64,000 nucleotides of DNA. It comes from Scyliorhinus canicula (taxonomy: Eukaryota). The stretch lies in contig NC_052158.1 of NCBI RefSeq assembly GCF_902713615.1, positions 17,976,546 to 18,040,545 on the forward strand, in the 5' to 3' direction. This document shows, piece by piece, positions 2,272-62,599 of the stretch. Positions within the stretch are counted from its first letter, which is position 1. Each line of letters opens with the position of its first letter. Below the pieces are notes generated by a model. The model did no database searches and was not told the origin of the DNA. It was given only the letters and a program-made list of their open reading frames with translations. The position numbers and the translations under genes were made by a program.

Positions 2272-5200
2272 ATGGCATCTCCAGATCTCACACAGGAACT
2301 AACCTGTCCCATCTGCCTGGAGATATTCACCCACCCGGTGTCTCTGGAATGTGGACATCATTTCTGCAGCTCCTGCATCTCCCAGAGTTGGCAGAAGGTC
2401 CCGGGAGATGTTTCCTGCCCCCAGTGTCGACAGGTGTTCACCCAGAGGAACGTCAGGCCCGCTCGGACCCTCATTAACATCGTGGAGAAGTTCAGAGAGG
2501 TGAAGGTGACACAGCCACAGGAGGAGTTTTACTGTCAGGAACACGAGGAGAAGCTGAAACTCTTCTGTGAAGTGGAGCAGAGAGCGATCTGTGTGGACTG
2601 CTGGAGTTCAGAACATCAAACTCACAAAGATTTACATATCAAAGAGGCTGTTCACATATACAAGGTATTGGATTTCTGCTGCTGGCGAAGGGAGACAGGG
2701 AAGAGGTGAGGAATGGAGGGAGGGTTGTACAGTGTGGGGAGGGAGAGGGGAGGCAAGAGGGAGTGGGGTAGGGACAGGGAGGGGGAGAGTGCCAGAGGGG
2801 TGATGGTGGAGACATCTTTAAAGATGAACACAAAGCGACCTGTCTGTTGTGTGGGATGTCCAGAGCTCATAAGACGCACAGTGTGATCCCAATAAAGGAG
2901 GCAGCCCAGATATACAAGGTACTGGATCACTGCTACTGACACAGGTAGATGGGGAAGAGGGACAGGGTGTAAGTCACAGAGAGAGGGAGTGTTTGTAGAA
3001 TGAGGGGAGGAGAAGAGAGAGCGGGAGAGACAGGGGTAGGGAAGGGGAGAGGGATGTTGAAAGAGGAGAGGGTTGGAGCATGTAGAGGATTGATTGAGGA
3101 GGGGAATTAACCTGGAGGAGGATAATTGCAATAAACAGAATTAACCCACAGTTTCTACTTTGTTTATTGAGTGTAATCAATGCTGAGAATATCTCCTTCT
3201 CTACCTCACTGGTCTAACTCTTTAATAACAGCAAACCCCTCCAGAAGGTGACAATGATTGTTTCCTTTGACAAACCCATTTGTGTCCTTTCTGTCTCAGA
3301 ACAAGTTAGAAACATCATTGGAAACTGTGCAGAAGCAAATGGACCTCAGTCTTCACAGTAAAAGAGAACGAGAGGATGGGATTTTCCACATGAAGGTAGG
3401 AGAATGTCCTTTAGGCTTTGTGTAAACTTCCCTGTGTTTGTTATTCAGAGTGAGTGAGCTTATCACACGGTCAGAGAGAGAGTTTTACTGAATAAAATGC
3501 TGCTGCTCCAAAGTACACTGTGGGCTGCTCCCTGAACTGCAATATAAGGGAGCGTCTGTAAATTGCAGATTATTATAACAATGTGTAAATGTCTTAATTT
3601 CTCCCTCCAGTCAATCCCATCAATTGATTAAATACATTTTGTCTGTAACTCACTCCCAGGTATCCATTATTCTATATATAAACCATCTGAACTCTTCGAT
3701 TAGATTCCAGTCTGATACTCACTCCCAGGTATCCATTATTCTATATGTCAACCATCTGAATTCCACAAACAGATTGCACAGTGACTCAGCCCTTGATGTC
3801 TATTATTTCATAATTAACCACTGGAATCACTTTACAATGATTGTTTGTAACTCAGTCCCACATACCCAATATTCCATCAAACTGTTCAGCCGGCAGTGAG
3901 CTGTTATTATTTGTTATTCGTCCTGGATATAAATTTTTATCCCTATATCCCAGTGGACAGAGACCAGGGACACTGGGTTTATAAACATTGTTTATTCCGT
4001 TCTGTATTCAATCTGTTCCAGGCTGAAGTTGACAGACTGAGAAATGAAATCAACAGTGAATTTGAAAAGATGCACAAGTTCCTGTTTGAGAAGGAGGAGC
4101 TGATGAAAGCAGAGTTGGAGAGAAAAAGCAATAAAATATTCGAGGAAATGGAGAACAATTTCTCCAAAACCATGGATGAAATGTCTTCTCTTGAAGGAGC
4201 AATAAGAGATCTTAAATCGAGACTGGAGGTACAAGAGGCCCCAGAGTTCCTCAAGGTACAAAATCTCTTTGTCTTGTCCAGTGAAACATTCCAGAGACGG
4301 AGGGCGGGCACTCTGACCTTTAACCTCTGGGTTTGGATTAGGCCTCAGTCTGATTGGTTGGATGATTGTCTCTTTGTGCTGTCAGTAAGGGTCCAATGGG
4401 AAATGAGGTAAGATAATCTCAGTGTGATTCCTATACACAGTGTAACCACGGCACTGATTGACGATTGGTCTCCAAGAGAGCTGGGCTGGGAACTGGAGAT
4501 GTTTACACTGCTGCAGATGGAGTTCTACTGAGATCTGCTGAGGACGGGTTAAAGTGCATTATTGCAGGGGTGATGGAGCTATGGTTAGAGAGATAAGAAT
4601 GGGAGCAGGTGAGGGTAGAACACCCAGCTGGACAACAGCGGAGAGGCGATGGAGGAGGATGGCGTGATCGACCGTGTCAAAGGCTGCAGACAGACCGAGA
4701 ATAATGAGGAGGGAAAGTTTGTAAGGATGGGTTTTTTGGGGAGAGGGGTGAAGATGTAGATTTAAATGAGAGAGAGTCAACACCTGAAGAGATTAAACAG
4801 TTTCCAATCCCAGCTAAAATAGGGACCAGGAGCGGAGGTTGGGAGATTAGTAGTTTTTGGGAATAGGATGGAGGGGACAGGAGGTTGGTCTGATGGACAA
4901 GATGAGCTCCGAGAGGGAATGAAAGGAAAAAGTAAAAGTTATTTTCTAACTGAAATCTTGGTCTCTCAATTTCTACTCGAGATTTACAACAAGAACTCTT
5001 TAATCTGATTCGATCATTTCTATTCTGTTCCTTTCCCCTCAGGATATTCAAGACCTATTGATGAGGTAAGCAGATATAAAGAAACAGTTTTGTGATGTGA
5101 TCACTGCTGTCTCTCTAACACACACTGATTTCCAGACCTGTTTTTACAGGAGTCAGATGGAGTTTCACAAGCCTGGAACTGTCTCCACTCAGTTACCTGT

Positions 5201-8200
5201 GGCTATCGCTGGTGAACCATTCAAATATATCAAAGTGTGGAGGGAAATGAGAGCAGTGATTTCACCAGGTATCATTCTCTGTATATTACTGTCTCCCTGA
5301 TGTTATCCACGTGATTAATGAGGTTTGACACACTGATGAAATGATTAGAAGATCAGAAGGAATAAGAACAGGAGTGGTCCAGCCCAGTGAACCTGCTCTG
5401 ATTTTTGATAAGATCATCTCTGATCTGATTGGGGCCTTTACTCCACTTTCCTGCCTGTCCCAGATGACCCTTAACCCCCCTGTTAATCAACAATCTCTCG
5501 AACTCGATCATGAATCAATGACCCAGCCTCTGCTGCTCTCTGTGGTAGAGAATTCCAAAGACTAATATCCCTCTCCGAGAAGGAATTCCTCCTCATCTCT
5601 GTCTTCAATAGACGGCTCCTTCATTTGATGCTGTGTCACCGACACCTCGATTGGCTCAGAGATCAAACATCCTCCCAGTATCTACCCTGGTGAAGGAATC
5701 CCCTCAGAATGTTATGTTTCAATAAGATCACCTCTTATTCTTCTAAACTCCAGTGAGTACAGACCCAACCAGCTCAACCTTTCCTCATAAGGCAATCCCT
5801 TCATCCCAGGAATCAGCCCAGTGAACCTTCTCTGAACTCTGTCCAATGACAGTCTCTCCCTCCTGATGTAAGGAGATCAGATCTGAACACAGTACTCAAG
5901 CTGCAGTCTCACCAATCCCCTGTAAAGTTGGAGCAAGTCTTCCCTACTTTACACTCCATCCCTTTCCAATAAAGGCCAACATTCCATTTGTTTTCCTCAT
6001 TCCTTGCTGTCCCTGGAGACTAACTTTTAGTGATTGATGTAGAAGGTCCCCCAGATCCCTCTGTACTGCAGCATTCTGCTGTCTCTTTCTATTGAAATAA
6101 TTTGCTGCTTTTCTATTCTTCCTGCCAAGGTGGACAACCTCCCATTTTCCCACATTATACTCCATCTGCTAAATCTTTGTCCACTCACTTAACCGGTCTA
6201 TATCCCTCCGCAGACACTTTGTATCCTCCTCACAACTTCCCAACCTCACTTTGTGGCATCAGTAAATTTGGCTACAGCATATTCGGTTTCTTCATCCAAT
6301 CAGGAATATTGATCATAAATAGTTGTATCCCCATCACTGATCAGTAATCTCGGGAATTTGGAAAGATTACCACCAATGCATCCACTTTCTCTCCAGCCCC
6401 TCCTTTAACATCCTGGGATGCAGGACATCAGGTCCAGGGGACGAGTTGTCTTTAATCCCATCGCTTTTCCAGATACTTTTTCTCTGGTGATCATGATTGT
6501 TTTAAGTTTGTCCCTCCCTTTTCCCTCCTGCTTTTCCCTAACACTGGATGACCCCAGGTGTTGTTCTTTGTATATTGTTGGGCATTTTTCTTTCCCCAGG
6601 TTATAAGAAAACATTTGTTTAACGATATTTTGACATTTCTGAGGGACATTGCCAGACCTCAGCACAGAGCACCGATTGGTCCCCACATGCCCCGTTGTCA
6701 AGACGGATACTCTTCCCCTCACTCCGTATACCAGTTACCATGACTACATTATATCCCCTCTGTGACCAAGGATAGGAACTCCCAACTTAGGCAGACATCA
6801 CCTTCTGTCTCTCCCTCAGCACTTTGCCTTGCTGTGAATGGAATTCAGTTCAGAGAAGTGTGAGGTTAATGTATTGGGAGGGGGAAGATATGACAAGGGA
6901 ATAGACAATAAGTGGTAAGATAGTGAGAGGCGTGGAGGAACAGAGGGAGATTTGAGTTTATGTCCACAGATTCAGGATAGGTGGATAAAGTGGTGACGCT
7001 AACACACCGGATATTTTCCTGTACTGACCACAGAATAGAAAATAAGAGCAGAGAGGTAATGTAGGAACTTTATTAAACATTAGTCTACAGCTAGAGCACT
7101 TTGTATCTTTCTGGTCAGTGTGCTGGAGAGGTTACCGAGGAGATTAGAAATAGAAATAGAAAATCGCTTATTGTCACGAGTAGGCTTCAATGAAGTTACT
7201 GTGAAAAGCCCCTAGTCGCCACACTCCGGCGCCTGTCCGGGGAGGCTGGTACGGGAATCGAACCGTGCTGCTGGCCTGCTTGGTTTGCTTTAAAGGCCAG
7301 CGATTTAGCCCAGTGAGCTAAACCAGCCCAGATTAATGAGGGTGTTGGATGGATCAGAGAATTTGAGTTCTGCGTTATGATTGGATAGATTGGGATTGTT
7401 TTCATTGGATCTGAGAAGGCTGAGGGGAGATTTAATTGAGGTATATAAAATTAGGAGTGTCCAGATAGAGTGGAAAGGAAATCCCGAGTCCCATTGCCTC
7501 GGGGTCCCTGACCAGGGAGAATAGATACAGGGTTAGAGGGAGGAGGATTAAAGGGATTATTTTCACACACAATGTGGTCTGGATCTATGAGTCACAGGTT
7601 GATAGAGGCAGAAACCCTCATAACATTTATAAAGTAATCAGATCTGCATTGAAAGTGCCGTAACCAAAAGAGTTACGAAGCAGAAACTGGAAACCGGGAT
7701 TGGGCTGGAGAATTCTTTTTCAGCCGAATCTCACAGGTTGGTCTGAAATTGCCTCTTCTTATGAATCCCAGAATATTTAAAAAAAAGCAGGTGACCGTTC
7801 GGGCCATTGTGTTCCTGCTAGCTCACTGCAAGATCAACTCACCCAGAGCCATTCCTTCACCTTTTTCTGTGTAGCTCTGCAGATTTAAGTTCTTCAGTTA
7901 ATGATTCAATTCCATATAAAAACTGTGATCCTAAACATTCGCTGTGTGAAAAGGTTTTCCCTCATGCTAATGTGGCTTCTTTTGTCAATCAATTTAAATT
8001 CTGTGTCCTCTGGTTCTCTTCTCTCAGGGGAACCACCTCAGCTTCTCCAATCTGTGTCCGTAACTGAAGTTCCACAGCTCAGGAACCATTGTGGTGAATA
8101 TTTCCTGCAGTCTCTCTAATGCCCTCAAAGTGTGTTGCCCAGATCAGAGTTGAGGGTTAACCAGTGTTTTATACAGATATAACTTTGTCACTCTATTCTG

Positions 8201-11200
8201 TGTTAATAAAGCCTAAGATGCTGCATTCTTTATTAACCACTCTCTCTCCTTGTCCTGTCACCGCTAATTGTGAAATGATATCCTGTGCATCAAGGTTTAG
8301 GTCATTAATTTACATCAGGAAAGTCAGAACCCTTTGAATACCAATGTATATCTATCTTCAGTCTGAACAAGCAACAACTGTCATTCACCCCGTTTCATAT
8401 CCATGTTGCTACTGTCCTCGTTATTCTGTATATTTTCTATGTTTCTGCCTGTTAGGGTGACTGTTCCCCTGTTGCCAGAGACTAGGGAACATACGAGGAG
8501 GTTAAAGGGCAAAACCGTGTATTGAGATATTGAAGTTATTTCTCTGTCATTTAGATGTAAATTTTCCACTGGGATCACTCCTTCCAGCTCTACAGCCCCC
8601 TTGTCCTGACTGAGATCTCGGAGGGGGGTGTAGGGCTGGAGGAGGAGAGCCCACTCCCTTGTCCTGGCTGAGATCTCGGAGGGGGGTGTAGGGCTGGAGG
8701 AGGAGAGCCCACCCCCTTGTCCTGGCTGAGATCTCGGAGGGGTGCTGTAGGGCTGGAGGAGGAGAGCCCACCCCCTTGTCCTGACTGAGATCTCGGAGAG
8801 GGGTGTAGGGCTGGTGGAAGTTACAGAGATACTGACTGGGGGGAATGCGGTGTATACGTTTAAGTTTGAGATATGTCTGGGTCAGAAGGCGATGGAATGG
8901 AATTCCCAGTGGGAATGTAGCTGTTGTCCGTGTTATCTCATCACTGAGTCAGAAAGCTGTAGATTTCTGTCCCATTCCAGAATATGGAGCAGGAAGTCCA
9001 GACTGACAATCCCAGCGCAGTACTGAGGAAGTGGCAGCACGGTGGCCTAGTGATTCGCACAGTTGCTTCTCAGCTCCATGGTCCCAGGTTCGATTCCCCG
9101 CTGGGTCACTGTCTGTGCCGACTCTGCACGTTCTCCGCGTGTCTGTGTGGGTTTCCTCCGGGTGCTCCGGTTTGCTCCCACAGTCCCAAGATGTGCAGGT
9201 GAGGTGGACTGGCCGTGATAAGTTGCCCTTTAGGCCGGTACAGACTTATTGGGCCGAATGGCCTCATTCTGCACTGTACATTCTATGATCTGTGATCTAT
9301 GAAGTGCTGCAGTGTTGGAGGAGCCTCTTTCAGATGAGACTTTACACCTTCTCAGCTGGAGGGCAATGATCCAGTGGCTGGAGTTTGAAGAGGAGGAGGA
9401 GAGCCCACCCCCTTGTCCTGACTGAGATCTCGGAGCGGTGTGTAGGACTCGAGGGCGAGAGCTCAGCCCCTTGTCCTGACTGAGATCTCGGAGGGGGGTG
9501 CAGGGCTGGAGGAGGAGAACCCACCCCCTTTTCCTGACTGAGATCTCGGAGGGGGTATAGGGCTGGAGGAGGAGAGCTTACCCCCTTGTCCTGACTGAGA
9601 TCTCGGAGGGGGGTTTAGGGCTGGAGGAGGAGAGCCCACCCCCTTATCCTGACTGAGATCTCGGAGGGGGGTAGGGCTGGAGGAGGTGACAGAGATAGGG
9701 GGCGCGATTCTCCGCTCCCCACGCTGGGAGGGAGAATCGCGGGAGGGCCGGGTGACTAATTTCACACCCCCCCGGCGCCCCCCGCAATTCTCCCACCCCC
9801 CCGGCTCGGAAAAAGCGCTGCTCGCCATTTTTCACAGCGACCGGCGACTCTCCGACCCGGATGGGCCGAGCGGCCGGCCGTTCGCGACCGTTTCACGGCG
9901 GCGGTAACCACACCTGGTCACTGCCGTCGTGTAATCGCCTTAAGATGCCCGTTTGGGGCTTGTAGGGGGCCTGGTGGGGACTGAGCACCACAACTGTTCT
10001 CGGGAGGAGACAGGCCCACAATCGGTGCCCACCGATGGTCGGGCTGGCGTCTCAATGGGACGCAATATTTCCCCTCCGCCGCCCCGCAAGATCAAGCCCC
10101 CACGTCTTGCGGGGCGGCTGAGGGGAAGACGGCAACTGCGCATGCGCGTCTGACATCACATAGGCGCCGCCGACGCGTCATTCTCGGCGCGCCGCCTTAA
10201 CGCAAGCTTCAAGGCCCAGCAGTTGAAAATAAAGGAGCGCCGCTCCTAGCCCCCCGGGTGGGGGTGAATACGCGCCCAGGATGTGGGCAGTGAGAATTTT
10301 AAGTTCGAGGCATTGCTGGGTTCAAAGCTGATGAGGATCAGTGAGCACTGGGGGGGCTGAAATTATCAACAGGGGACAACCAGTGTCAGATTCCAGTAGA
10401 TTGAGCTCAGGGCGGTGACTGACTTCCTACAACTTGTCTTAACCAAGGTCCTGTACTGGAGGGAGATCTTTATTCTCAGTAAATTGATGCTGATCTGAGC
10501 TGAGTGAACGGGGCTGAGGGAATGGGGAGAAATTTCTTCAGACACTCTGTCCCTGAGCTTCCACAGTTCCTGGGCTGAGGAAAGTGGTGATGTCCCATCA
10601 CCGTCTGCACATGTCTCGTCATTCACTTCTGTTTTTCTCACAGTAACAGCTTCCCAATCATGTTCTCTTCCAGTTCCAGCATCTCTCACCCTGGACCCAG
10701 AGACAGCACACAACAAACTCATCATTTCCCAGGATCTGACTAGTGTGAGGTACGGAAATGAGGAGCAAGATCTCCCAGAACATCCGGGAAGATTTGATAA
10801 ATATGTGTACGTTTTGAGCTCCCAGAGTTTCACATCAGGGAGACACTACTGGGAGGTGGGTCTTGGAAACAAACCTTACTGGATTGTGGGTGTCTGCAGA
10901 GAGTCTGTCAACAGGAAAGGAAATATCACAGAGTCACCTGAGAATGGATTCTGGGTCATCGCCTGGCTTTCTGGCGGCAAATCATTGAAATTCCTGGATG
11001 TCATCTCGCAGCTAAAAGTGAAACCCCGGAAGTTGGGAATTTACCTGGATTATGAGGGAGGACAGGTATCATTTTACGATGCTGAGGACATGTCTCACCT
11101 GTACACCTTCACTGACACATTCACCGAGAAACTCTACCCCATCTTTAATCCCTGTAATAATAAGTCTGGTAATAACTCTGAGCCACTCACACTGCTCTCT

Positions 11201-11206
11201 GGGTAA
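2272..11206 (+). CDS. TRIM E3 ligase copy 1 (RING-Bbox2-CC-PRY/SPRY, TRIM39/TRIM27/A33-like), intact, about 465 aa
   Basis: Exons 2272-2664, 3300-3395, 4022-4255, 5043-5065, 5150-5268, 10674-11206; all introns GT-AG; 1398 nt in frame. C3HC4 RING, B-box2, LTLDPETA, GRHYWEV and LDYEGG motifs. Confidence 0.92.
3641..3790 (+). repeat. 69-bp minisatellite, about 2 units (copy 1 intron 2)
   Basis: Unit gtctgtaactcactcccaggtatccattattctatatataaaccatctgaacccctcgattagattcca. Confidence 0.85.
5340..6520 (-). mobile_element. Decayed CR1-clade LINE 3' fragment in intron 5 (also about 21960-23740, 38213-39290, 51950-53110)
   Basis: MEYNVGKWEVVHLGRKN...VQRDLG...NGMLAFI is typical CR1 ORF2 C-terminal sequence. 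Confidence 0.8.
6830..7720 (+). mobile_element. Highly decayed CR1-like LINE fragment (present in each unit)
   Basis: CR1-like 3' motifs such as ggctgaggggagatttaattgaggtatataaaatt and aacatttataaag. Confidence 0.55.
7147..7329 (-). mobile_element. tRNA-derived SINE, copy 1-specific insertion
   Basis: Minus-strand A/B boxes (ggtttagctcactgg, ggttcgattcc), tttcta-type tail, TSD agatta at 7141-7146 and 7330-7335. The site is empty in copies 2-4. Confidence 0.85.
8596..8830 (+). repeat. 58-bp GC-rich minisatellite, about 4 units
   Basis: Unit ccccttgtcctgactgagatctcggaggggggtgtagggctggaggaggagagccca. Confidence 0.9.
9033..9300 (+). mobile_element. V-SINE/HE1-like SINE (paralogous copy at 41650-41915)
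   Basis: tRNA-like head ggcagcacggtggc...ggttcgattcc plus V domain gtgggtttcctccgggtgctccggttt. Confidence 0.85.
9391..9690 (+). repeat. 58-bp minisatellite, about 5 units
   Basis: Same unit as the array at 8596. Confidence 0.9.
9700..10277. mobile_element. Non-autonomous Harbinger-type MITE (right TIR partly deleted)
   Basis: Left TIR gggcgcgattctccgctccc, 3-bp TSD agg, homologous to 42259-42878. Confidence 0.75.
10674..11206 (+). CDS. TRIM copy 1 terminal exon, PRY/SPRY (B30.2) domain
   Basis: Acceptor ttccag at 10668-10673; VPASLTLDPETA...GRHYWEV...LDYEGG...EKLYP; stop ends at 11206; AATAAA at 11504-11509. Confidence 0.93.
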
Positions 11207-11924
11207 CGCAGTGGGACACGTTTTGGGAGGTCGGAGTTTTAGTGAGAAGCCTGATTCCCTGTCTGAACAGCTCATGTTGTCCTGATTCTCTGCTGTGTAC
11301 TGTCAGGGGGTGAGTGTGTTTCTGTATTGTTTATTCTGTAAATTTAACTCAGATTCTCCACCCATCCCACTGTCCCGATCTCAATATAATGGGACCCATA
11401 AACACTGGACTGGTATAGAATGAAGCAAAATCTCCTGAATTGTGGTAACTGTGCCCAGCTCTCGAACAATTCGCTCTGAATCTTTATTTTGTTTCCTCCC
11501 TTGAATAAATATTTTATTTGAAGACGGGACTGACACCTGGTGTGATGATTATTGATTCAGTGAATGAGCAGAAAGAATGTTTTTTCACTCCTGTATGGGA
11601 TGTGGGTGTCACTGGCTGAGCCCTCGTTACCCATCCGTAATTGCCTTTGAGAAAGTGGTGTAGGTACACCCACTGTGCTGTTAGGGAGGGAGTTCCAGGA
11701 TTTGGACCCAGCGACAGTGAAGGAACGGCCGATGTGTTTCCAAGTCAGGATGGTGAGTGACTGGAAGGGAACCTCCAGGTGGTGGTATCAGGAATGAGAA
11801 TATCAGAATAGGTTCCGGAGTAGGACCTGTGACCATTCGGGAAGATCCTGTCTGAACATCAACATCGACTCCACTTTCCCATCCTATCCCTTCATTCCCT
11901 TTGTACTCAGGAATATATAGATCT

Positions 11925-12495: not shown

Positions 12496-12499
12496 GAGA

Positions 12500-15400
12500 T
12501 CCTGATGTCCAAGAGGCTGATTTGACAGAAGCTGTTGGTATTGAGCTGCGGCAGTCTGTGGCACCATTCAGTTAGCTCATAACTGATCCATATCCGAAAT
12601 GTAGACCAGAACGTCACGTGATGGGAGCGTGCCAAAATTCCCTGGATGTGGGAGTCATGGCCGAGCATCCCAATCAGACTGTGATGGCTGGCCACTGGGC
12701 CTGAACACTGCCGGAGGCAACACCAGACACACAGCAGCCGAGATCTGAACACCCAGGGGATGGGCCCCAACACCGGGGACATGTCCATGGCCGGAGGGTG
12801 GGTGAGTTCGATGGGGAGGGGACCAGCACCCGGTCCAGGTACAGTTATGTGCAGGAGTCAGGGGTACAGGTCTGGGGTCCGTTGAGGGGTTGGGGGGGGG
12901 GGGGGGGGGGGGCGTTGGGCTCGATCGGGATGTGTGGAATCTCGCAGGCCACAGCCGACATGTCCATCCGACAGGTCACGGGAGCCCTGTTTGCCCAGGT
13001 GGAAAACTACCTCAAGTTTGACAAGGACCCAGCCGATCAAAATGCCCAGGCAGCAGGATTCTCCGCTGTCGCCGGGATGCCCCAGGTCCAGGGGCTGATA
13101 GACTGCACGGATGTCGCCTTGCGTGCACCAGGCCAGCTGGGAGTGCCCTACATCAACAGGAAGAGGTTCCACTCCCTGAACGTGGAACTCGTGTCTGATC
13201 ACCACATGCAGATCATGCACGTGTCTGCACGCTTCCCAGGGAGTGTGCACGACAGCTAAATCCTGGGGTAGTCAGACGTTCCCGGCCTCTTTGAGGACCA
13301 CCCCAGGATGGCGGCTGGCTCTTGGGGATCATGGGTACCCGCTGAGGACCTGGCTAATGACACCAGTATGGAGACCCGGTACAACGAGGCTAATGTGGCC
13401 ACTCGAGCTGCAATGGAGTGGTCCATCGGACTGCTTCAATGCTCTCCCGATGCCTCGGCCGGTCTGGTGATGCCCTGCACACCCCCTGGAGGGTCACCCG
13501 CTTTGTGGTGGTCTGATGTGTTCTCCACAACCTGACACAGGAGCAGGGTGAAGGTAGGGATGAGGAACCTGTGGCCAACTCCGAGGTGGAGGTGACAAGG
13601 ACGAGGGTGATGAGGAGGCGCTGGACCAGCAGGGGTTGAAGGACCAGCCGGAGGCTGCAGGACAGGCAGCAGCGGCCAGGATCCGGCCAGCCTGGAGGGC
13701 CAGGAAGTCCCAAATACCCACTTCACATCGGGTGTGGCCTCTTTCATCATCGCAACCTTCCTCCCATTTCTCACTCACCCAGGGTATCACATCAGGGTGC
13801 TGGAGCTGTGTCGGCACCGTCAGCCGGTCACTGTCGAGGACAGAAGGTGATGATAACCCACAGAGAGCTGAGCGTAGGTGCTCCTCAATGTAGTCTGACC
13901 CCCGGCCACTCTGCTGAGTGCTCGCCCAGACCCATCACCTGGTTGGTGTGTGTGTGGGGTGGGGGGGGGGGGGGTGTTGGTGCATGTCTGGAGAGATGGG
14001 CTAAGGGTTCGGAGGTCACCCACATTGCGGAGGAAAGTGATAGAGGTGTTATACTGGTTGTGGTGAACGGTTTATAATGTTTCACAGGCGTCCAACAGTG
14101 CCCAACCCTCCCGATGGTACCGCCCCACTCTCCCTTCCACCCACTCACACCCCCTACCCACCCCCCCTCTCTCTCTCTCTCTCTCTCTCCCCCCCCCCCC
14201 CCCCCCCCCCCCCCAGTGCCCTCTCAGTGACCCTCAATGTGCTTAGCCTTCCTTGTTCTGCCGCTACGGTGTATCCCCAGGATTATAAATCAGAGTTGGA
14301 GGCAGCCAGCTGCTTACCATGCCCCGTGACCTTCGATGCCCCTGACAGGCATCCTCTGGGGGCTCTGTGGCCAGAGGACCCCGGTGACTTGTCAGCGCCA
14401 CATGCACGGCCCTGTCCCTTGTGCTGACCCCAAGACGCGGCCTCATCAGATGAGTGAAACCCGGGGGAGCTGGTGGGCCACCATCCCCAATTCAGGGTAG
14501 GGGTCTGGGTTGGTACCCAGCGACCCTTCCTCCTGGTCGGTGCCCATAGGGCACTGCGGCTCGAGCCCCTCCGCTGTCTGGCCCTGCCAGCCCTGGCACC
14601 CCGATGTCTGCACCATCCTGTTGACGCCCTCGGCGATGTTCCTCAGTGACTGGGCAATGCTCTGCCGTGCCCTGGCAATGCCCACCCGCGACTGGGACAA
14701 GCTCCGCCGCGTCTCGGATATTCCCATCTGAGAGTGGGACATGACCCGCAAAACCTCATCACGTTCAGTTTGATATTGGATCACATCCCACAGCAAGGCA
14801 GACATATTGCCGAAGCCCTCAGCCATGACCGTTACAAACTGCGTGATGCCTTGGACACCTTCATTACTGCTGCTCACGTTGTGCACCAGGCTCTCCACTG
14901 CGGTCGCCACCCTAGCAGTGTTGGCCTCAGTGCCACCCATTACCGGCGACATCTTCTGTGACCAGAGCCTCTGGTACTCCTCCAATTGGCTATGGTGCTG
15001 CTGGAGAGTTGCTGACATCTCCCTCTGAATGTCTCGAACGTTCCCCAACATCTCCATCAGCTCCGGGATAGCCTGGTCATAGACTCAGCATCAGGCTGGG
15101 AACCAGCTGGGTCCTGGGATCCATCAGACCTCAGGCTGCTGTCTCTCCTGATGGACATCAGCAGCTGTGTGATGCTCACCACATTGTGCCCCAGAGGCCT
15201 GACCGCTAACGTTGCCCAGCGAGGTGTGTGTTTCTGCGCTGGTAGCGGGTGGGGATGGCAGTGTGCCGCGTCGATTGTGGTATCCACGGAGCTGTCCTCC
15301 AAGGTGGTCTCATGGGAGGCAGGGGACGGGACCACCCCAGATGGCAGGGTACTGTCGGCTAGAGGACCTGTGGGAGAATGGACACGTGGTCAATGGGAGG

Positions 15401-16381
15401 GATGGAGGACCTGAGGGAGAATGGACACGTGGTCAATGGGAGGGATGGAGGACCTGAGGGAGAATGGACACGTGGTCAATGGGAGGGATAGATGACCTGA
15501 GGGAGAATGGACACGTGGTCAATGGGAGGGATGGAGGACCTGAAGGAGAATGGACAAGTGGTCAATGGGAGGGATAGATGACCTGTGGGAGAATGGACAC
15601 GTGGTCAATGGGAGGGATGGAGGACCTGTGGGAGAATGGACACGTGGTCAATGGGAGGGATGGAGGACCTGAGGGAGAATGGACACGTGGCCAATGGGAG
15701 GGATGGAGGACCTGAGGGAGAATGGACACGTGGACAATGGGAGGGATGGAGTACCTGAGGGAGGATGGACACATGGGCAATGGGAGGGATGGAAGACCTG
15801 AGGGAGAATGGACACGTGGTCAATGGGAGGGATGGAGGACCTGAGGGAGAACGGACACGTGGTCAATGGGAGGGATGGAGGACCTGAGGGAGAACGGACA
15901 CGTGGTCGATGGGAGGGATGGAGGACCTGCGAGAGAATGGACATGTGGTCAATGGGAGGGATGGAGGACCTGAGGGAGAATGGAAACGTGGTCAATGGGA
16001 GGGATGGAGGACCTGCGGGAGAACGGACACGTGGTCAATGGGAAGGATGGAGGACCTGCGAGAGAATGGACATGTGATCAGTGGCATTGAGGGGTCAGCG
16101 TGTGTGACAGGGCATCATCAGGCATATGTGTGGCCCACAGTAGTTGGGGTGGGGGTGTTAAAGAAGGGAGATGGGGGTGAAGGGTAGGGATTGAAGGGAG
16201 GGTTGCGGTGATAGATGCTCGCTTGGGGGCGAAAAGGTCTTGGGAAGGAGGGGGGTAGGGGTAGTGTCCACTCACCCGTGCTGCCCAGTGTAGATCTTTG
16301 ACCTTCTTGCGGCAATGGAGGCCAGTCCTCCTGGTCACGCTTCCCGAGCTGACAACCACTGCCACTTCATCCCAGGCAGCA
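12500..16381. mobile_element. Decayed PIF/Harbinger DNA transposon: DDE transposase on +, Myb/SANT gene on -
   Basis: + strand GLIDCTDV, NRKRFHSLNVELV, ARFPGSVHDS then TAA at 13257-13259, LGDHGYPL..WLMTP. Minus strand SGSVTRRTGLHCRKKVKDL. Confidence 0.85.
15361..16078 (+). repeat. 43-bp minisatellite, about 16-17 units, most containing CACGTG
   Basis: Unit ggaggacctgagggagaatggacacgtggtcaatgggagggat. Confidence 0.95.
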
Positions 16382-42245: not shown

Positions 42246-42258
42246 TGACAGAGATAGG

Positions 42259-42878: not shown

Positions 42879-43274
42879 AGGGTGTGGGCAGTGAGAATTT
42901 TAAGATCGAGGCATTGCTGAGTTCAAAGCTGATGAGCATCAGTGAGCACTGGGGGGGCTGAAATTATCAACAGGGGACAACCAGTGTCAGATTCCAGTAG
43001 ATTGAGTTCAGGGCGGTGACCGACTTCCTACAACTTGTCTTAACCGAGGTCCTGTACTGGAGAGAGATCTTTATTCTCAGTGAATTGATGCTGATCTGTG
43101 CTGGGTGAACGGAGCTGAGGGAATGGGGAGGAATTTCTTCAGACACTCTGTCCCTGAGCTTCCACAGTTCCTGGGCTGAGGAAAGTGGTGATGTCCCATC
43201 ACCGCCTGTACACGTCTCGTCATTCACTCCTGTTTTTCTCTCAGTAACAGCTTCCCAATCATGTTCTCTTCCAG

Positions 43275-45121: not shown

Positions 45122-45314
45122 ATGAGTTACAGACTGGCATCTATGCGAGGGGTTCAGATGGTTTATATATAGAATAATGGATATCTGGGAGTGAGTTACA
45201 GACTGGAATCTAATTGAGGGGTTCAGATGGTGTAAATATAGAATAATGGATACCTGGGAGTGAGTTACAGACTGGAATCTAATCGAGGGGTTCAGATGGT
45301 TTATATATAGAATA
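45122..45314 (-). repeat. Inverted 69-bp minisatellite, about 3 units
   Basis: Reverse complement of the intron-2 unit. Confidence 0.9.
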
Positions 45315-50900: not shown

Positions 50901-53900
50901 GAAACATTCCAGAGACTGAGGGCAGGGACTCTGACCTTTCACCTCTTGGTTTGGATTAGGCCTCAGTCTGATTGGTTGGATGAGTGTCTCTTTGTGCTGT
51001 CAGTAAGGGTCCAATGGGAAATGAGGTGAGATAATCTCAGTGTGATTCCTATACACAGCGTAACCACGGCGCTGATTGATGATTGGACTCAGAGAGAGCT
51101 GGGCTGGGAACTGGAGATGTTTACACTGCTGCAGATGGAGTTCTACTGAGATCTGCTGAGGATGGGTTAAAGTGCATTATTGCAGGGGAGATGGAGCTAT
51201 TGTTAGAGAGATAAGAATGGGAGCGGGTGAGGGTAGAACACCCAGCTGGACAACAGTGGAGAGGAGATGGAGGAGGATGGCGTGATTGACCGTGTCAAAG
51301 GCTGCAGGCAGACCGAGAATAATGAGGAGGGAAAGTTTGTAAGGATGGGTTTTTTGGGGAGAGGGGTGAAGATGTAGATTTAAATGAGAGAGAGAGAGAC
51401 AACACCTGAAGAGATCCCAGCTAACATGGGGGCCAGGAGCGGAGGTTGGGAGATCAGTAGTTTTGGGAATAGGATGGAGGGGACAGGAAGTGGGTCTTAT
51501 GGACAAGATGAGCTCCAAGAGGGAATGAAAGGAAAAAGTAAAAGTTATTTTCTAACTGAAATCTTGGTCTCTCAATTTATACTCGAGATTTACAACAAGA
51601 ATTCTTTAATCTGATTCGATCATTTCTATTCTGTTCCTTTCCCCTCAGGATATTCAAGACCTGTTGATGAGGTAAGCAGATATAAAGAAACAGTTTTGTG
51701 ATGTGATCACTGCTGTCTCTCTAACACACACTGATTTCCAGTCCTGTTTTTACAGGAGTCAGATGGAGTTTCACAAGCCTGGAACTGTCTCCACTCAGTT
51801 ACCTGTGGCTATCGCTGGTGAACCATTCAAATACATCAAAGTGTGGAGGGAAATGAGAGCAGTGATTTCACCAGGTATCATTCTCTGTATATTACTGTCT
51901 CCCTGCTGTTATCCACGTGATTAATGAGGTTAGACACACTGATGAAATGATCAGAAGATCAGAAGGAATAAGAACAGGAGTGGTCCAGCCCAGTGAACCG
52001 GCTCTTATTTTTGATCAGATCATGTCTGATCTAATTGGGGCCTTTGCTCCACTTTCCTGCCTGTCCCAGATGACCCTTAACCCCTTGTTGATGAACAATC
52101 TATGGAACTTGGTCATGAATCAATGACCCAGCCTCTGCTGCTCTCTGTGGTACAGAATTCCAAAGACTAATATCCCTCTCCGAGAAGGAATTCCTCCTCA
52201 TCTCTGTCTTCAATAGAGGCCCCTTCATTTGATGCTGTGTCACCTACACCTCGATTGGCCCAGAGATCAATCGTCCTCCCAACATCTACCCTGGTGAAGG
52301 AATCCCCTCAGAATGTTATGTTTCAATAAGATAACCTCTTATTCTTCTAAACTCCAGTGAGTACAGACCCAACCAGCTCAACCTTTCCTCATAAGTCAAT
52401 CCCTTCATCCCAGGAATCAGCCCAGTGAACCTTCTCTGAACTCTGTCCAATGAGAGTGTCTCCCTCCTGATGTAAGGAGATCAGATCTGAACACAGTACT
52501 CAAGCTGCAGTCTCACCAATCCCCTGTAAAGTTGGAGCAAGTCTTCCCTACTTTACACTCCATCCCTTTTCCAATAAAGGCCAACATTCCATTTGCTTTC
52601 CTCATTCCTTGCTGTACCTGGACACTAACTTTTAGTGATTGATGTACAAGGTCCCCCAGATCCCTCTGTACTGCAGCATTCTGCTGTCTCTTTCTATTGA
52701 AATAATTTGCTGCTTTTCTATTCTTCCTGCCAAGGTGGACAACCTCCCATTTTCCCACATTATACTCCATCTGCTAAATCTTTGTCCACTCACTTAACCG
52801 GTCTATATCCCTCCGCAGACACTTTGTATCCTCCTCACAACTTCCCAACCTCGCTTTGTGGCATCAGAACATTTGGCTCCAGCATATTCAGTTTCTTCAT
52901 CCAATCAGGAATATTGATCATAAAAAGTTGTATCCCCATCACTGATCAGTAATCTCGGGAATTTGCAAAGATTACAACCAATGAATCCACTTTCTCTCCC
53001 GCCCCTCCTTTAAAATCCTGGGATGCAGGACATCAGGTCCAGGGGACAAGTTGCCTTTAATCCTGTTAGTTTTGCAGATATTTTTTCTCTGGTGATCATG
53101 ATTGTTCACAATTTATCCCTCCTGCTTTTCCCCAACACTGGATGACCCCATGTGTTGTTCTGTGTATGTTGTTGGGTATTTTTCTTTCCCCAGGTAATAG
53201 GAAAACATTTATTTAACGATATTTTGACATTTCTGAGGGACTTTGCCAGACCTCAGCACTGAGCACTGATTGGTCCCCACATGCCCCGTTGCTATGACTG
53301 ATACTCTTCCCCTCACTCCGTACACCAGTTACCATGACTACATTATATCCCCTTCTGTGGCCAAGGACAGGAACTCCCAACTTAGGCAGACATCACCTTC
53401 TGTCTCTCCCTCAGCACTTTGCCTTGCTGTGAATGGAATTCAGTTCAGAGAAGTGTGTGGTTAATGTATTGGGAGGGGGAAGATATGACAAGGGAATAGC
53501 CAATAAGTGGTAAGATAGTGAGAGGTGTGGAGGAACAGAGGGAGATTTGAATTTATGTCCACAGATTCAGGACAGGTGGATAAGGTGGTGAAGATAACAC
53601 ACCGGATATTTTCCTGGACTGACCACGGAATAGAAAATAAGCGCTGGGAGCTAATGTCGGAACTTTAGAAAACACGTTAGTCCACAGCTAGAGCACTTTG
53701 TATCTTTCCGGTCAGTGTGTTGGAGAGGTTACCGAGGAGATTAATGAGGGTGTTGGCTGGTTCAGAGAACTTGAGTTCTGAGTTATGATTGGATGGATTG
53801 GGATTGTTTTCATTGGATCAGAGGAGACTGAGGGGAGATTTAATTGAGGTGTATAAAATTAGGAGTGTCCAGATAGAGTGGAAAGGAAATCCCGAGTCCC

Positions 53901-56763
53901 ATTGCCTCGGGGTCCCTGATCAGAGAGAATAGATACAGGGTAAGAGGGAGGAGGGTTAAAGAGAATATTTTCACTCAGAATGTGGTCTGAATCTGGAACT
54001 CACAGCCTGAAAGGGTGTTGGAGGCAGAAACCCTGGTAACATTTATAAAGTAATCAGATCTGCACTGAAAGTGCCGTAACCGACTGAGTTACGGAGCAGA
54101 AACTGGAAACCGGGATTGGGCTGGAGAATTATTTTTCAGCCGAATCTCACAGGTTGGTCTGAAATTGCCTCTTTCTATGAATCCCAGACTGTTTACAAAC
54201 TGAGAGGTGACCATTCGGCCCATTGTGTTCCTGCTAGCTCACTGCAAGACCAACTCACCCAGGGCCATTCCTTCACCTTTTTCTCTGTCGCTCTGCAGAT
54301 TTAAGTTCTTCAGTTAATGATTCAATTCCATATGAAAGCTGTGATTGAATCTGATTCCAATACAGTGCATTCCTGATCCTAAACACTCGCTGTGTGAATA
54401 GGTTTTCCCTCACGCTAATGAGGCTTCTTTTGTCAATCAGTTTAAATTCTGTGTCCTCTGGTTCTCTTCTCTCAGGGGAACCACCTCAGCTTCTCCAAAC
54501 TGTGTCCGTAACTGAATTTCCTCCTCCCAGGAATCATTGTGGTGAATGTTTCCTGCACTCTCTCTAATGCCCTCACATCCTCCCTCAGAGCGTGTTCCCA
54601 GATCAGAATTGAGGGTTAACCAGTGTTTATACAGATATAACTTTGTCACTCTATTCTGTGTTAATAAAGCCTAAGATGCTGCATTCTTTATTAGCCACTC
54701 TCTCTCTCCTTGTCCTGTCACCGCTAATTGTGAAATGATATCCTGTGCATCAAGATTTGGGTCATTAATTTACATCAGGAAAGTCAGAACCCTTTGAATA
54801 CCAATGTATATCTATCTTCAGTCTGAACAAGCAACAACTGTCATTCACCCCGTTTCATATCCATGTTGCTACTGTCCTCGTTATTCTGTATATTTTCTAT
54901 GTTTCTGCCTGTTAGGGTGACTGTTCCCCTGTTGCCACGGAGACTAGGGAACATACGAGGAGGTTAAAGAGCAAAACCGTGTATTGAGATATTGAAGTTA
55001 TTTCTCTGTCATTCAGATGTCAATTTTCCACCGGGATCACTCCTTCCAGCTCTACAGCCCCCTTGTCCTGGCTGAGATCTCAGAGGGGGGTGTAGGGCTG
55101 GAGGAGGAGAGCCCACCCACTTGTCCTGACTGAGATCTCAGAGGGGGGTGTAGGGCTGGAGGAGGAGAGCCCACCCACTTGTCCTGACTGAGATCTCAGA
55201 GGGGGGTAGGGCTGGAGGAGGAGAGCCCACCCCCTTGTCCTGACTGAGATCTCAGAGGGGGGTAGGGCTGGAGGAGGAGAGCCCACCCCCTTGTCCTGAC
55301 TGAGATCTCAGAGGGGGGTGTAGGGCTGGAGGAGGAGAGCCCACCCACTTGTCCTGGCTGAGATCTCGGAGGGGGGTGTAGGGCTGGAGGAGGAGAGCCC
55401 ACCCCCTTGTCCTGGCTGAGATCTCGGAGGGGGGTGTAGGGCTGGAGGAGGAGAGCCCACCCCCTTGTCCTGGCTGAGATCTCGTAGGGGGTTGTTGGGC
55501 TGGAGGAGGTGACAGAGATAGGGGGCGTGATTTTCGGCTCCCCACGCCGGGTGGGAGAATCGCGGGAGGGCCGGGCGACTAATTTCACGCCCCCCCCCCC
55601 CCCGCGATTCTCCCACCCACCCGCTCGGAAGAATCGCAGTTCGCCGTTTTTCACGGCAACCGGCGATTCTCCGACCCGGATGGGCCGAGCACCCGGCCGT
55701 TCGGGACCATTTCACGACGGCGGCAACCACACCTGGTCGCTGCCATCGTGAAAACGCCATAAGATGCCCGTTTGAAACTTGGCCGAGTTCACGACGGCCT
55801 TCACGATTTTTCCCGGGAGCGGAGAATCTCGTCCAGGGTGTGGGCAGTGAGAATTCAAAGTTCGAGTCATGTCTGGGTTCAAAGCTGATGAGGATCAGTG
55901 AGCACTGTGGGGGCTGAAATTATCAACAGGTGACAACCAGTGTCAGTATCCAGTAGATTGAGTTCAGGGCGGTGACTGACTTCCTACAACTTGTCTTAAC
56001 CGAGGTCCTGGACTGGAGAGAGATCTTTATTCTCAGTGAATTGATGCTGATCTGCGCTGGGTGAATGGAGCTGAGGGAATGGGGAGGAATTTCTTCAGAC
56101 ACTCTGTCCCTGAGCTTCCACAGTTCCTGGGCTGAGGAAAGTGGTGATGTCCCATCACCGTCTGTACACGTCCCGTCATTCACTCCTATTTTTCTCACAG
56201 TAACAGCTTCCCAATCATGTTCTCTTCCAGTTCCAGCATCTCTCACCCTGGACCCAGTGACAGCAAACAACCTACTCATCATTTCCCAGGATCTGACTAG
56301 TGTGAGGGACGGAAATGAGGAGCAAGCTCGACCTGATCATCCGGGAAGATTTGATAAACGCTTCTATGTGTTGAGTTCCCAGAGTTTCACGTCAGGGAGA
56401 CACTACTGGGAGGTGGGCCTTGGAAACAAACCTCGCTGGATTGTGGGTGTCTGCAGAGAGTCTGTCAACAGGAAAGAACTAATCATTCCTTCACCTGAGA
56501 ATGGATTCTGGGTCATCGCCCGGCTTCCTGACTGCAAATCATTGAAAATCCCGGATGCCATCTCGCAGCTGAAAGTGAAACCCCGGAAGTTGGGAATTTA
56601 CCTGGATTATGAGGGAGGACAGGTATCATTTTACGATGCTGAGGACATGTCTCACCTGTACACCTTCACTGACACATTCACTGAGAAACTCTACCCCATC
56701 TTTAGTCCCTGTTATAATATCTTTGGTAAAAACCCTGACCCACTCACACTGCTCTCTGGGTAA
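47905..56763 (+). CDS. TRIM E3 ligase copy 4 (RING-Bbox2-CC-PRY/SPRY), intact, about 466 aa
   Basis: Exons 47905-48300, 48684-48779, 50640-50873, 51649-51671, 51756-51874, 56231-56763; GT-AG; 1401 nt in frame. AATAAA at 57061-57066. Confidence 0.93.
49014..50410 (+). repeat. 69-bp minisatellite, about 20 units (copy 4 intron 2)
   Basis: Accounts for the 498-aa ORF with a 23-aa period. Confidence 0.97.
55057..55510 (+). repeat. 58-bp minisatellite, single array of about 8 units
   Basis: Same unit as the array at 8596. Confidence 0.9.
55523..55834. mobile_element. Harbinger-type MITE, internally deleted
   Basis: Degenerate TIRs, TSD agg. Confidence 0.75.
56231..56763 (+). CDS. TRIM copy 4 terminal exon, PRY/SPRY domain
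   Basis: VPASLTLDPVTANN...GRHYWEV...LDYEGG...DPLTLLSG*. Confidence 0.93.
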
Positions 56764-57989
56764 CGCAGTGGGACACGTTTTGGGAGGTCGGAGTTTTAGT
56801 AAGAAGCCTGATTCACTGTCTGAACAGCTCATGTTGTCCTGATTCTCTGCTGTGTGCTGTCAGGGGGTGAGTGTGTTTCTGTATTGTTTATTCTGTAAAT
56901 TTAACTCAGATTCTCCACCCATCCCACTGTCCCGATCTCAATCTAATGGGACCCATAAACACTGGGCTGGTATAGAATGAAGCAAAATCTCCTGAATTGA
57001 TGTAACTGTGCCCAGCTCTCGAACAATTCATTGTGAATCTTTATTTTGTTTCCTCCCTTGAATAAATATTTTATTTGAAGACGGGACTGACACCTGATGT
57101 GATGATTATTGATTCAGTGAATGAGCAGAAAGAATATTTTTCCACTCCTGTATGGGATGTGGGTGTCGCTGGCTGAGTCCTCTTTGCCCATCCCTAATTG
57201 GCCTTGAGAAGGTGGTGTAGGTACACCCACAGTGCTGTTAGGGAGGGTGTTCCAGGATTTGGACCCAGCGACAGTGAAGGAACGGCCGATATGTTTCCAA
57301 GTCAGGATGGTGAGTGACTGGAAGGGAACCTCCAGGGGGTGGTATCAGGAAAGAGAATATCAGAATAGGTTCCGGAGTACGACATGTGACCATTCGGGAA
57401 GATCCTGTCTGAACATCAACACCGACTCCACTTTCCCATCCTATCCCTTCATTCCCTTTGTACTCAGGAATATATCGATCTCTGTGTTGAATATACTCAC
57501 TGACATCTCGCCGAGAGAGAGAATTCCAAAGATTCCAAACTCTCTCTGCGGAAGGAATTTCTCCTCATCTCAGTCTTAAATGGACGACCCCTTATCCTGA
57601 TTCTGTGACCCCTCGTTCTAGACCAATCTCAGCATCTACCCTGTCAGGATCTCTTAGAATTGTATATGTTTCAATAAGATCATCTCTCATTCTTCTAAAC
57701 TTCAAAGAATATAGAGCCATCCAACTCAATCCCTCCTCATATCGGAAACCCTTTCATCCCAAGAATCAATTCCGTGAACCTTCATTGCTCCCTCTAAGGT
57801 AAGTATATGTTTCCTCAGGTAAGGAGACTGAAACTGTCCACAGCCCTCCAGCTGTGTCCACACTCAATCCCTGTTACATTGCAGCAAGACTTATTCTCTG
57901 ATACTCCAACCCCATTGTAATAAAGGCTAAGATACCATTTCCCTCCCTGATTGTTCACTGTATCTGCTTGTTACCTTTCTCTGCTTCAG

Positions 57990-59010: not shown

Positions 59011-59012
59011 TA

Positions 59013-59413
59013 ATGAGTTACAGGCTGGCATCTAATCGAGGTGTTCAGATGGTTTATATATAGAATAATGGATACCTGGGTGTGAGTTACAGACTGGAAT
59101 CTAATCGAGGGGTTCAGATGGTTTATATATAGAATAATGGATACCTGGGTGTGAGTTACAGACTGGAATCTAATTGAGGGGTTCAGATGGTTTATATATA
59201 GAATAATGGATACCTGGGAGTGAGTTACAGACTGGAATCTAATCAAGGGGTTCAGATGGTTTATATATAGAATAATGGATATCTGGGAGTGAGTTACAGA
59301 CCGGAATCTAATTGAGGGGTTCACCTGGTTTATATATAGAATAATGGATACCTGGGAGTGAGTTACAGAGTGGAATCTAATCGAGGGGTTCAGATGGTTT
59401 ATATATAGAATAG
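59013..59413 (-). repeat. Inverted 69-bp minisatellite, about 6 units
   Basis: Reverse complement of the intron-2 unit. Confidence 0.9.
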
Positions 59414-59796
59414 TGGGTAGCACTGTAGCACAGTGGTTAGCACTGTTGCTACACAGTTCCAGGGTTCCAGGTGCAATTCCCTGCTTGGGCCACTGCCAGT
59501 GTGGAGTCTGCACGTTCTCCCTGTGTCTGTGTGGGTTTCCTCCGGGTGCTCCGGTTTCCTCCCACAAGTCCCGAAAGATGTGCTGTTAGGTAATTTGGAC
59601 ATTCTGAATTCTCCCTCTGTGTACCCAAACAGGCTCCAGAACGTGGCAACTAGTGGCTCTTCACAGTAACTTCATTGCTGTGTTAATGTAAGCCTACTGG
59701 TGACAATAATAAAGATTATTATTATATTTATGGTTTCACTCAATCTGGTCTCCAACTGAAAGGCAGCTGACAGTGCAAGTGGTCATTCACAACACT

Positions 59797-61087: not shown

Positions 61088-61724
61088 ATCAGAGAGGTTC
61101 CGGCAGGATTGAGGGGGGAAAAGATGGGCCCGGATTTGGGAGGGAGAGAGAGAGACTCTCCAGGAATTTGGAGAACAAGGGCGAGGTTGGAGATGGGGGT
61201 GGACATGTTCAAAAATATGTTTTTTGTGAGAATGAGGGTCAGACGGTGACAGGGTGGAGAGAGGATAAGGAGGGGCTCAGGGATGAGATAGATTTGGAAA
61301 GGACATGGGGGGAGGGGAGGAGAGAAACTAGAGAAAGATGTGGGGGTGAAGGGGGGATGTTTGGTCAGTGGGTTGGGAGGGGCAGGAGGTTAGTAACAGA
61401 AACAGCTGTAAGGATGGTCTGGACTAAGAAAGCTATTGCTGAGTTCCTCACACGGGGGAGTTGAGGGAGGTGGGGAAAGGTGAGAGAGAGTTTTCAAGGG
61501 GTAGGTTTGTAGAGAGAGAAGAGCAATATGTTATAAATCTGACTTTATAAAAGTGAAAAAGGGTCCAGACACAATAAAGGGGTCAGTTTGATTCAATACC
61601 AAAGTTGCTGACACTGAGTGTGTCACTGATCACGTGAAGTGAAATCCAGGAAGTGCAGAACTGAACAGGAATTGAAAGTGAAAGAGCTGGAACAGGGACC
61701 GAGAGAGAGACTCTGGGCACTGAG

Positions 61725-62599
61725 ATGGCATCTCCAGATCACACACAGGAACTAACCTGTCCCATCTGTCTGGAGATATTCACCCACCCGGTGTCTCTGG
61801 AATGTGGACATCATTTCTGCAGCTCCTGCATCTCCCAGAGTTGGCAGAAGGTACCGTGAGATGTTTCCTGCCCCCAGTGTCGACAGGTCTTCACCCAGAG
61901 GAACGTCAGGCCCGCTCGGACCCTCATTAACATCGTGGAGAAGGTCAGAGAGGTGAAGGTGACGCAGCCACAGGAGGAGTTTTAGTGTCAGGAACACGAG
62001 GAGAAGCTGAAACTCTTCTGTGAAGATGAACACAAAGCGATCTGTGTGGTGTGTGGGATGTCCAGAGCTCATAAGACGCACAGTGTGATCCCAATAAAGG
62101 AGGCAGCCCAGATATACAAGGTACTGGATCACTGCTACTGGCACAGGTAGATGGGGAAGAGGGACAGGGTGTAAGTCACAGAGAGAGAGAGTGTTTGTAG
62201 AATGTGGGGAGGGGAAGAGAGGGCTGGAGAGACAGGGATAGGGAAGGGAAGAGGGATGTTGAAAGAGGAGAGGGTTGGAGCGAGTAGAGGATTGATTGAG
62301 GAGGGGAATTAACCTGGAGGAGGATAATTGCAATAAACAGAATTAACCCACAGCTTCTACTTTGTTTATTGAGTGTAATCAATCCTGAGAATATCTCCTT
62401 CTCTATCTCACTGGTCTAACTCTATTTAAACACAGCAAACTCCTCCAGAAGGTGACAATGATTGTTTCCTTTGACAAACCAATTTCTGTCCTTTCTGTCT
62501 CAGAACAAGTTAGAAACATCATTGGAAACTCTGCAGAAGCAAATGGACCTCAGTCTTCACAGTAAAAGAGAACGAGAGGATGGGATTTTCCACATTAAG
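61725..62599 (+). pseudogene. TRIM copy 5 pseudogene (exons 1-2 in window, continues past the window end)
   Basis: Exon 1 61725-62120 has in-frame TGA at 61857-61859 (codon 45) and TAG at 61983-61985 (codon 87). Exon 2 is 62504-62599. Confidence 0.88.

Follow-up and report, generated by a model that had tools for sequence, protein, structure and literature searches.

A stretch of 64,000 nucleotides from the catshark Scyliorhinus canicula (contig NC_052158.1, positions 17,976,546 to 18,040,545), referred to as the window in the following, is best explained as part of a large tandem array of class-IV TRIM E3 ubiquitin ligase genes located on one S. canicula chromosome. We consider this explanation, taken as a whole and including the mechanism outlined below, to be probable; diversification of the B30.2 loops, birth-and-death evolution, and lineage-specific amplification are supported by the data. 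Self-BLAST of the window yielded five tandem units (A to E) of 13–16 kb with pairwise identities of 90–96%. Their starts, deduced from the self-comparison, are at approximately 1.4 (A), 18.1 (B), 34.5 (C), 47.0 (D), and 61.1 kb (E). The encoded gene type has six exons and comprises RING, B-box, coiled-coil, and PRY/SPRY (B30.2) domains. These units and the detection of RING, B-box, PRY, and SPRY by Pfam agree with a sequence-only reading of the same DNA, which had postulated a five-copy TRIM-PRY/SPRY array, and all peptides quoted in that reading were found on the plus strand at approximately 10.7–11.2, 43.3–43.8, and 56.3–56.8 kb. Only the copies A and D are intact; three of the five units (B, C, and E) are broken, such that the postulated birth-and-death evolution is directly visible.

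The mechanism that we propose has several components. The array would grow by duplication of units, and units would be lost by deletion, inversion, and the acquisition of stop codons. Segments are also exchanged between paralogues, through gene conversion or unequal recombination. Purifying selection presumably keeps the RING, B-box, and coiled-coil (RBCC) part and the β-sandwich of the B30.2 domain constant, and the loops of the B30.2 ligand-binding face would be kept different between copies. This difference may arise along two routes, namely by rapid replacement of amino acids, as between A and D, and by old loop cassettes that were retained or imported, as for loop v1 of C. The intact copies may each recognise another variant of a ligand that evolves rapidly, with a pathogen protein being the most plausible candidate, and the bound ligand might be ubiquitinated or signalled from, as is the case for TRIM5α and TRIM21. 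We only infer such a ligand, an antiviral role, and a response to interferon.

Variability and selection in the SPRY exon

The SPRY exons of A, C, and D differ in discrete patches, as the sequence-only reading had stated: the framework (124 codons) is 97.0–98.4% identical, the patches (53–54 codons) only 73–77%. The substitutions are not distributed uniformly. In a three-way alignment of 7 kb, v1 accounts for 31 variable columns out of 60; the average is 4.9, and the runner-up among the windows reaches 15 (binomial probability 2e-18). The AlphaFold model of the D PRY/SPRY domain has a predicted local distance difference test (pLDDT) score of 94.4, and its best structural match is TRIM21 PRYSPRY (PDB 2iwg; template modelling (TM) score 0.90, root-mean-square deviation 1.5 Å, 41% identity). 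All five patches (residues 27–45, 63–68, 76–91, 98–118, and 159–170) lie between B30.2 strands of this model, which confirms their assignment to B30.2 loops; residues 27–45 correspond to the β2–β3 loop, which is VL1/v1 (PMC2657112). The variation is concentrated on the known binding face and is unequal between loops. The positions that vary between A, C, and D are also the hypervariable ones across 14 S. canicula paralogues. In this set, an entropy of 0.62 outside the strands contrasts with 0.15 within them, and every loop insertion or deletion is in frame.

The nucleotide-based selection tests made use of three sequences, namely those of A, C, and D. For the SPRY framework, nonsynonymous divergence (dN) is 0.004–0.014 and synonymous divergence (dS) is 0.05–0.06, with ω values (dN/dS) of 0.07–0.24. 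This dS matches the intron divergence of 0.053–0.061; for the non-exonic DNA of the three copies, the divergence is 0.051–0.058, and the identity between units outside the exons is approximately 94–95%. The RBCC exons gave a dN of 0.015, a dS of 0.02–0.05, and ω values of 0.3–0.8. For the SPRY patches, a dN of 0.29, a dS of 0.26–0.49, and ω values of 0.59–1.14 were determined. Loop dN is therefore about five times the intron rate; for the whole exon, the proportion of nonsynonymous differences (pN) exceeds the intron rate by a factor of 1.5 in every pair (Poisson p 0.01–0.02). On the sequence level, the comparison with the intron rate favours diversifying selection, without proving it.

The dN/dS ratio of the loops is low because loop dS is raised by codons with multiple hits and by an older v1 cassette of C. 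Each pair contains 8–13 multi-hit patch codons, and path averaging counts part of each as synonymous. In v1 of C, clean silent changes are in excess: for A and C, they affect four of nine codons with the same amino acid, as opposed to 5 of 142 in the remaining sequence (p = 7e-4); for C and D, the corresponding p value is 0.008. Furthermore, this loop contains an insertion of 3 bp, and the variant recurs in the paralogue P0167. The v1 loop of C is an older cassette, either imported or retained. Between A and D, silent changes are not raised (1/16). Their loops differ by 25 amino acids and one clean silent change; the single-hit codons comprise 17 nonsynonymous and one synonymous, to which eight multi-hit codons are added. 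The silent excess occurs only in pairs with C and is absent in the pair of A and D. It follows that not every loop can be read as an old cassette, and a model in which all of them are was ruled out. A loop dN/dS at or below 1, which the sequence-only reading had named as speaking against it, is formally found in two of the three pairs with the Nei-Gojobori method (NG86). Codon-level positive selection in the loops is consequently only partly shown by these sequences, and gene conversion also contributes to the loop pattern.

Gene models, segment exchange, and family tree

The exons were searched with the 478-residue paralogue P0010 as a guide. The six exons have lengths of 393/396, 96, 234, 23, 119, and 533/536 bp, and every splice site is a canonical GT..AG. 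An initial exon model, in which a TCFY segment was read through the acceptor of exon 5, was ruled out by the RefSeq protein P0155, by a search for the 23-bp exon 4, and by RNA joints. The 23 bases preceding exon 5 (5127–5149, 21746–21768, 37999–38021, and 51733–51755) resemble the 23-bp exon 4 to about 70% and misled tblastn. Possibly, exon 4 was duplicated long ago and this copy has come to provide the acceptor; a chance resemblance is the alternative.

Pfam assigned RING domains (PF15227, PF13445, PF00097) to residues 12–52 of A, B, and D, with all eight zinc ligands of the C3HC4 type present, and a B-box type 2 (PF00643) to residues 84–124. PRY (PF13765) and SPRY (PF00622) were identified in the last exons of A, C, and D and are missing in B, where this exon is deleted. 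Exon 3 alone gave no Pfam match. In the AlphaFold2 model of P0155, the B-box is followed by a coiled coil in the form of a continuous 109-residue helix (residues 123–231) and then by shorter linker helices. Taken together, these data show the architecture of an E3 ligase of TRIM class IV, which consists of RING, B-box 2, a long coiled coil, and PRY/SPRY.

The near identity of the RBCC exons, which the sequence-only reading had noted, exists only in part. It does not apply to A with its half B-box graft, to C, whose exon 1 is split with an inverted 5' half and a 1-bp insertion, and to E, which carries two stop codons. Gene A corresponds to P0155, which is annotated as zinc-binding protein A33-like and whose exon-6 acceptor lies 30 nt further upstream. 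The second half of the B-box of A and about 150 bp of the next intron are sharply unlike those of B to E, and in the graft the spacing between the last Cys and His is shorter by one residue. A native copy of the half B-box is left at 2820–2918, stranded within intron 1 of A. The divergent A-type half B-box is also found in the paralogues P0164 and P0167. Unit B has kept the upstream alternative acceptor, the use of which would append a tail of 25 codons. In unit C, the inverted segment adjoins a LINE-like element (long interspersed nuclear element); the RING half is thus inverted and frameshifted, and exons 2–6 are open. The RefSeq model P0152 (711 residues, span 18312–43810) joins exons 1–5 of B in frame to the truncated exon 1 and exons 2–6 of C, with exon 5 of B being connected to an AG that was created at the inversion junction of C (exon start 35405). 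The product of this model would possess two B-box/coiled-coil modules. The in-frame stop codons in exon 1 of unit E are located at 61857–61859 and 61983–61985. In the RefSeq protein P0203, loops v1–v3 are the same as in D (98.8% identity over 56200–56709), and differences are found in the coiled coil and at the C terminus; this comparison suggests a very recent duplicate of the D SPRY exon elsewhere on the chromosome.

Several tests addressed exchange between copies. Copy-specific differences occur in runs, also within introns (329 runs versus 390 expected); this clustering was still present after the exclusion of exon 6 (p<0.0002), and the sequences align cleanly at the runs. A compatibility test of the pairwise homoplasy index (PHI) type gave p<0.0005 for 12 full-length paralogues and p<0.001 for 14 paralogues when restricted to the SPRY exon. 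All four pairings of loop variants were observed for v1/v2 and likewise for v3/v4. Exchange between paralogues is shown by these tests.

A phylogenetic tree was calculated for 35 full-length shark proteins, in which Heterodontus, Pristiophorus, and Heptranchias were represented by one chosen sequence each. The eight S. torazame copies all group together in a single clade (support 99) that is nested among the S. canicula copies, and the three Mustelus copies form another one (99), which agrees with the lineage-specific expansion suggested by the sequence-only reading. Lamniform sharks have two older lineages. The deeper branches are blurred by recombination. The tree topology points to species-specific amplification, to concerted evolution, or to both.

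Array setting, expression, and upstream motifs

The array is part of a chromosome of 163.5 Mb (S. canicula assembly GCA_902713615.2). All S. canicula family members that protein searches retrieved with a recorded contig are located on this chromosome, except for a partial model whose contig measures 5 kb. The automatic names of the gene group vary and include A33-like, TRIM39-like, nuclear factor 7-like, and TRIM69-like. The coordinates of genes, loops, and repeats are compiled in the table.

Features of the window; positions are counted from its first nucleotide
Feature	Position	Strand	Remarks
SPRY coding exons	A 10674-11206, C 43275-43810, D 56231-56763	+	three copies
Loop v1 (β2-β3)	A 10751-10810; C ~43352-43414; D 56308-56367	+	hypervariable
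Codon KPxW	D 56434-56436, residue 68 (D SPRY numbering)	+	single hypervariable codon, 7 states among 14 paralogues
Loop v2	D 56476-56490 (residues 82-86); A 10919-10933	+	hypervariable
Loop v3	D 56518-56556 (residues 96-108); A 10961-10999	+	hypervariable
Loop v4	D 56704-56739 (residues 158-169); A 11147-11182	+	hypervariable
Gene A	2272-11206	+	intact (conceptual), 465 residues; exons 2272-2664, 3300-3395, 4022-4255, 5043-5065, 5150-5268, 10674-11206
Gene A, grafted second half of B-box and start of intron	2573-2920	+	divergent
Gene B	18312-21887	+	exons 1-5 intact: 18312-18707, 19091-19186, 20639-20872, 21662-21684, 21769-21887; no PRY/SPRY exon
Unit B, deletion junction	26849-26871	+	1.2 kb missing, equivalent to A 10666-11875, including exon 6
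Unit C, inverted segment	34544-35392	-	promoter region plus initial 161 bp of exon 1 (ATG 34705), 1-bp insertion
Gene C, remainder	35405-43810	+	3' part of exon 1 35405/35407-35634; further exons 36008-36103, 36906-37139, 37915-37937, 38022-38140, 43275-43810
Gene D	47905-56763	+	intact (conceptual), 466 residues; exons 47905-48300, 48684-48779, 50640-50873, 51649-51671, 51756-51874, 56231-56763
Gene D, 3' untranslated region	56764-57079	+	AATAAA 57061; end of RNA contig 57079
Unit E, pseudogene	61725-62599	+	exon 1 61725-62120, exon 2 62504-62599; remainder beyond the window
Retroelement integrase open reading frame	110-1204		rve and Integrase_H2C2
DDE_Tnp_4 transposase fragments	12798-13259, 28053-28526		Harbinger type
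43-bp minisatellite	15362-16084, 29802-30142		beside the DDE_Tnp_4 fragments
69-bp minisatellite, intron 2	3641-3775, 19432-20411, 36335-36638, 49014-50414, 63066-63875		2, 14, 4.4, 20, and 12 copies in A to E
69-bp minisatellite, inverted	45123-45314, 59014-59416		downstream of units C and D
High-copy interspersed repeats	57200-57399, 55400-55799		3' flank and intron 5

The retroelement integrase reading frame lies some 1 kb ahead of gene A, and a triple tandem repeat of 118 bp comes after it. The transposase fragments are confined to the spacers that follow units A and B. The depth of the two segments in the 3' flank and in intron 5 is enormous in both DNA and RNA runs; they are therefore high-copy interspersed repeats.

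Gene D is transcribed and spliced as predicted. The RNA reads of run X24 are confined to the exons and the 3' untranslated region of D, and the RNA joints with GT..AG borders are exact at 51671|51756 and 51874|56231. In run X14, one contig spans the joined exons 3 to 6 of D, and an RNA contig of 408 nt is 100% identical to D over v1–v3. For exon 6 of C, a fraction of 0.25–0.47 of the sampled words was present in the RNA index, these being framework words common to paralogues. A protein search with SPRY only retrieved no transcript-derived family members.

IRF-like (interferon regulatory factor) motifs AAGTGAAA precede exon 1 in every unit. Upstream of exon 1, neither a strict interferon-stimulated response element (ISRE) nor a gamma-activated sequence (GAS) element was detected. 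An ISRE-like core GAAAGTGAAA is located at 34746–34756 (minus strand, unit C) and at 61670–61684 (unit E), about 45 bp upstream of the ATG; at this position, A, B, and D read GACAGTGAAA. A scan for bacterial promoters and terminators, a type of scan that is not applicable here, yielded nothing.

Known systems and alternative explanations

Multigene class-IV TRIM sets with diversifying B30.2 loops are known from teleosts and mammals; a full-text literature search retrieved no paper describing such TRIM arrays in sharks. The full-length search listed amphibian TRIM39 at 44% identity. SPRY searches gave coelacanth "TRIM39-like" and mammalian TRIM69 at about 51–53%, with TRIM69 being the closest mammalian match and none being TRIM5; the comparison with TRIM39/btr covered names and identities. 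Primate TRIM5α belongs to the tandem cluster TRIM6/34/5/22, in which copies were gained and lost, and its loops v1–v4 form the specificity surface. The catshark array resembles TRIM5α in domain architecture, in the hypervariability of the B30.2 loops, and in tandem clustering with gain and loss. In contrast, the shark copies are far more numerous and nearly identical; of the two systems, TRIM5α is the one with known capsid binding and restriction. TRIM21 binds the conserved Fc part of IgG and is not found in a comparable array of paralogues. The catshark SPRY domain has the same β-sandwich, and the variable loops correspond to the ligand pocket of TRIM21; the shark copies differ precisely in these loops.

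The array is close in kind to the finTRIM (ftr), btr (trim39/bloodthirsty-like), and hltr (trim35-like) sets of teleosts, which are RBCC-B30.2 arrays with hypervariable, positively selected B30.2 loops, VL1 (β2–β3) being the hotspot, with recombination inside B30.2, and with some copies lacking B30.2 (PMC2657112, PMC3137616). Arrays, loop hypervariability with v1 as hotspot, recombination, and a copy without B30.2 are common to both. The catshark array differs by its shark host, by an independent expansion in Scyliorhinus, and by a loop selection that is only partly shown. FinTRIMs are reported to be specific to teleosts, no counterpart having been found in the elephant shark (PMC2657112).

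Several observations weigh against the explanation given here. The selection tests are based on three nucleotide sequences, and the limits of the patches were chosen after the data had been seen. The pairwise NG86 dN/dS values of the loops are 0.59, 1.14, and 0.59, such that they do not provide the classical proof of positive selection, and the single-hit test for A and D is marginal (p = 0.058). Among the RefSeq models that entered the full-length recombination test, some span several units and may be chimeric; the SPRY test was performed within a single exon and is therefore free of this problem. Expression of D is low in both runs read, and the canonical ISRE core is restricted to units C and E, both of which are broken.

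An extended version of the proposed explanation would regard the array as a germline cassette library, in which gene conversion shuffles loop and half-B-box segments among more than 15 paralogues and creates a combinatorial B30.2 repertoire. The broken units B, C, and E would then persist as donors, or read-through splicing would rescue them, the P0152 model being an example. If this were true, the shark would hold combinatorial specificities rather than independently evolving genes. We consider this version a tentative idea, and rather doubtful.

It is unlikely, and slightly more so, that the loops are simply unconstrained and carry old neutral variation that gene conversion has moved or failed to erase, without any positive selection. 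The loop dN/dS values of 0.6–1.1, the raised silent changes in v1 of C, the conversion-like runs throughout the introns, and the fact that three of five units are already pseudogenes are compatible with neutrality. However, a loop dN that exceeds intron divergence fivefold is difficult to reconcile with it, as is the ratio of replacement to clean silent changes in the loops of A and D. Moreover, the reading frame was preserved by all loop indels of the 14 paralogues, and the variation is found on the known binding face and is not equal across loops.

More improbable still is a diversifying pressure that is real and not viral, with endogenous retroelements, germline proteins, or self proteins as ligands. 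The automatic names A33-like and nuclear factor 7-like fit this alternative. A33 and nuclear factor 7 are amphibian oocyte or egg proteins. Furthermore, the array is dense with retroelements and transposons, and the upstream scan provided no evidence for interferon control. On the other hand, gene names are homology labels and not tested functions, the IRF-like motif is present upstream of every exon 1, and the well-studied multigene class-IV TRIM sets with hypervariable loops are all linked to the sensing or restriction of viruses (PMC2657112, PMC3137616).

That collapsed or stacked alleles were written as tandem units by the assembly can hardly be entertained. The units are highly similar, and of the words sampled from unit D, no more than about 45% were present in Logan DNA contigs, but the units diverge by 5–6% and differ in deletions, an inversion, transposon insertions, and minisatellite copy numbers. 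In 28 of 30 bins, DNA contigs of another study agree with D at 97% identity or more, the match of spliced RNA to D is exact, and S. torazame has many paralogues as well.

We therefore return to an array of TRIM genes with diversifying loops. These genes are already contained in RefSeq under automatic names, and the gain is one of interpretation and not a new kind of system. For comparative immunologists, the locus is compact, and duplication, pseudogenisation, and cassette exchange are visible together. The catshark array would extend the innate-immunity strategy of amplified TRIM genes to cartilaginous fish.

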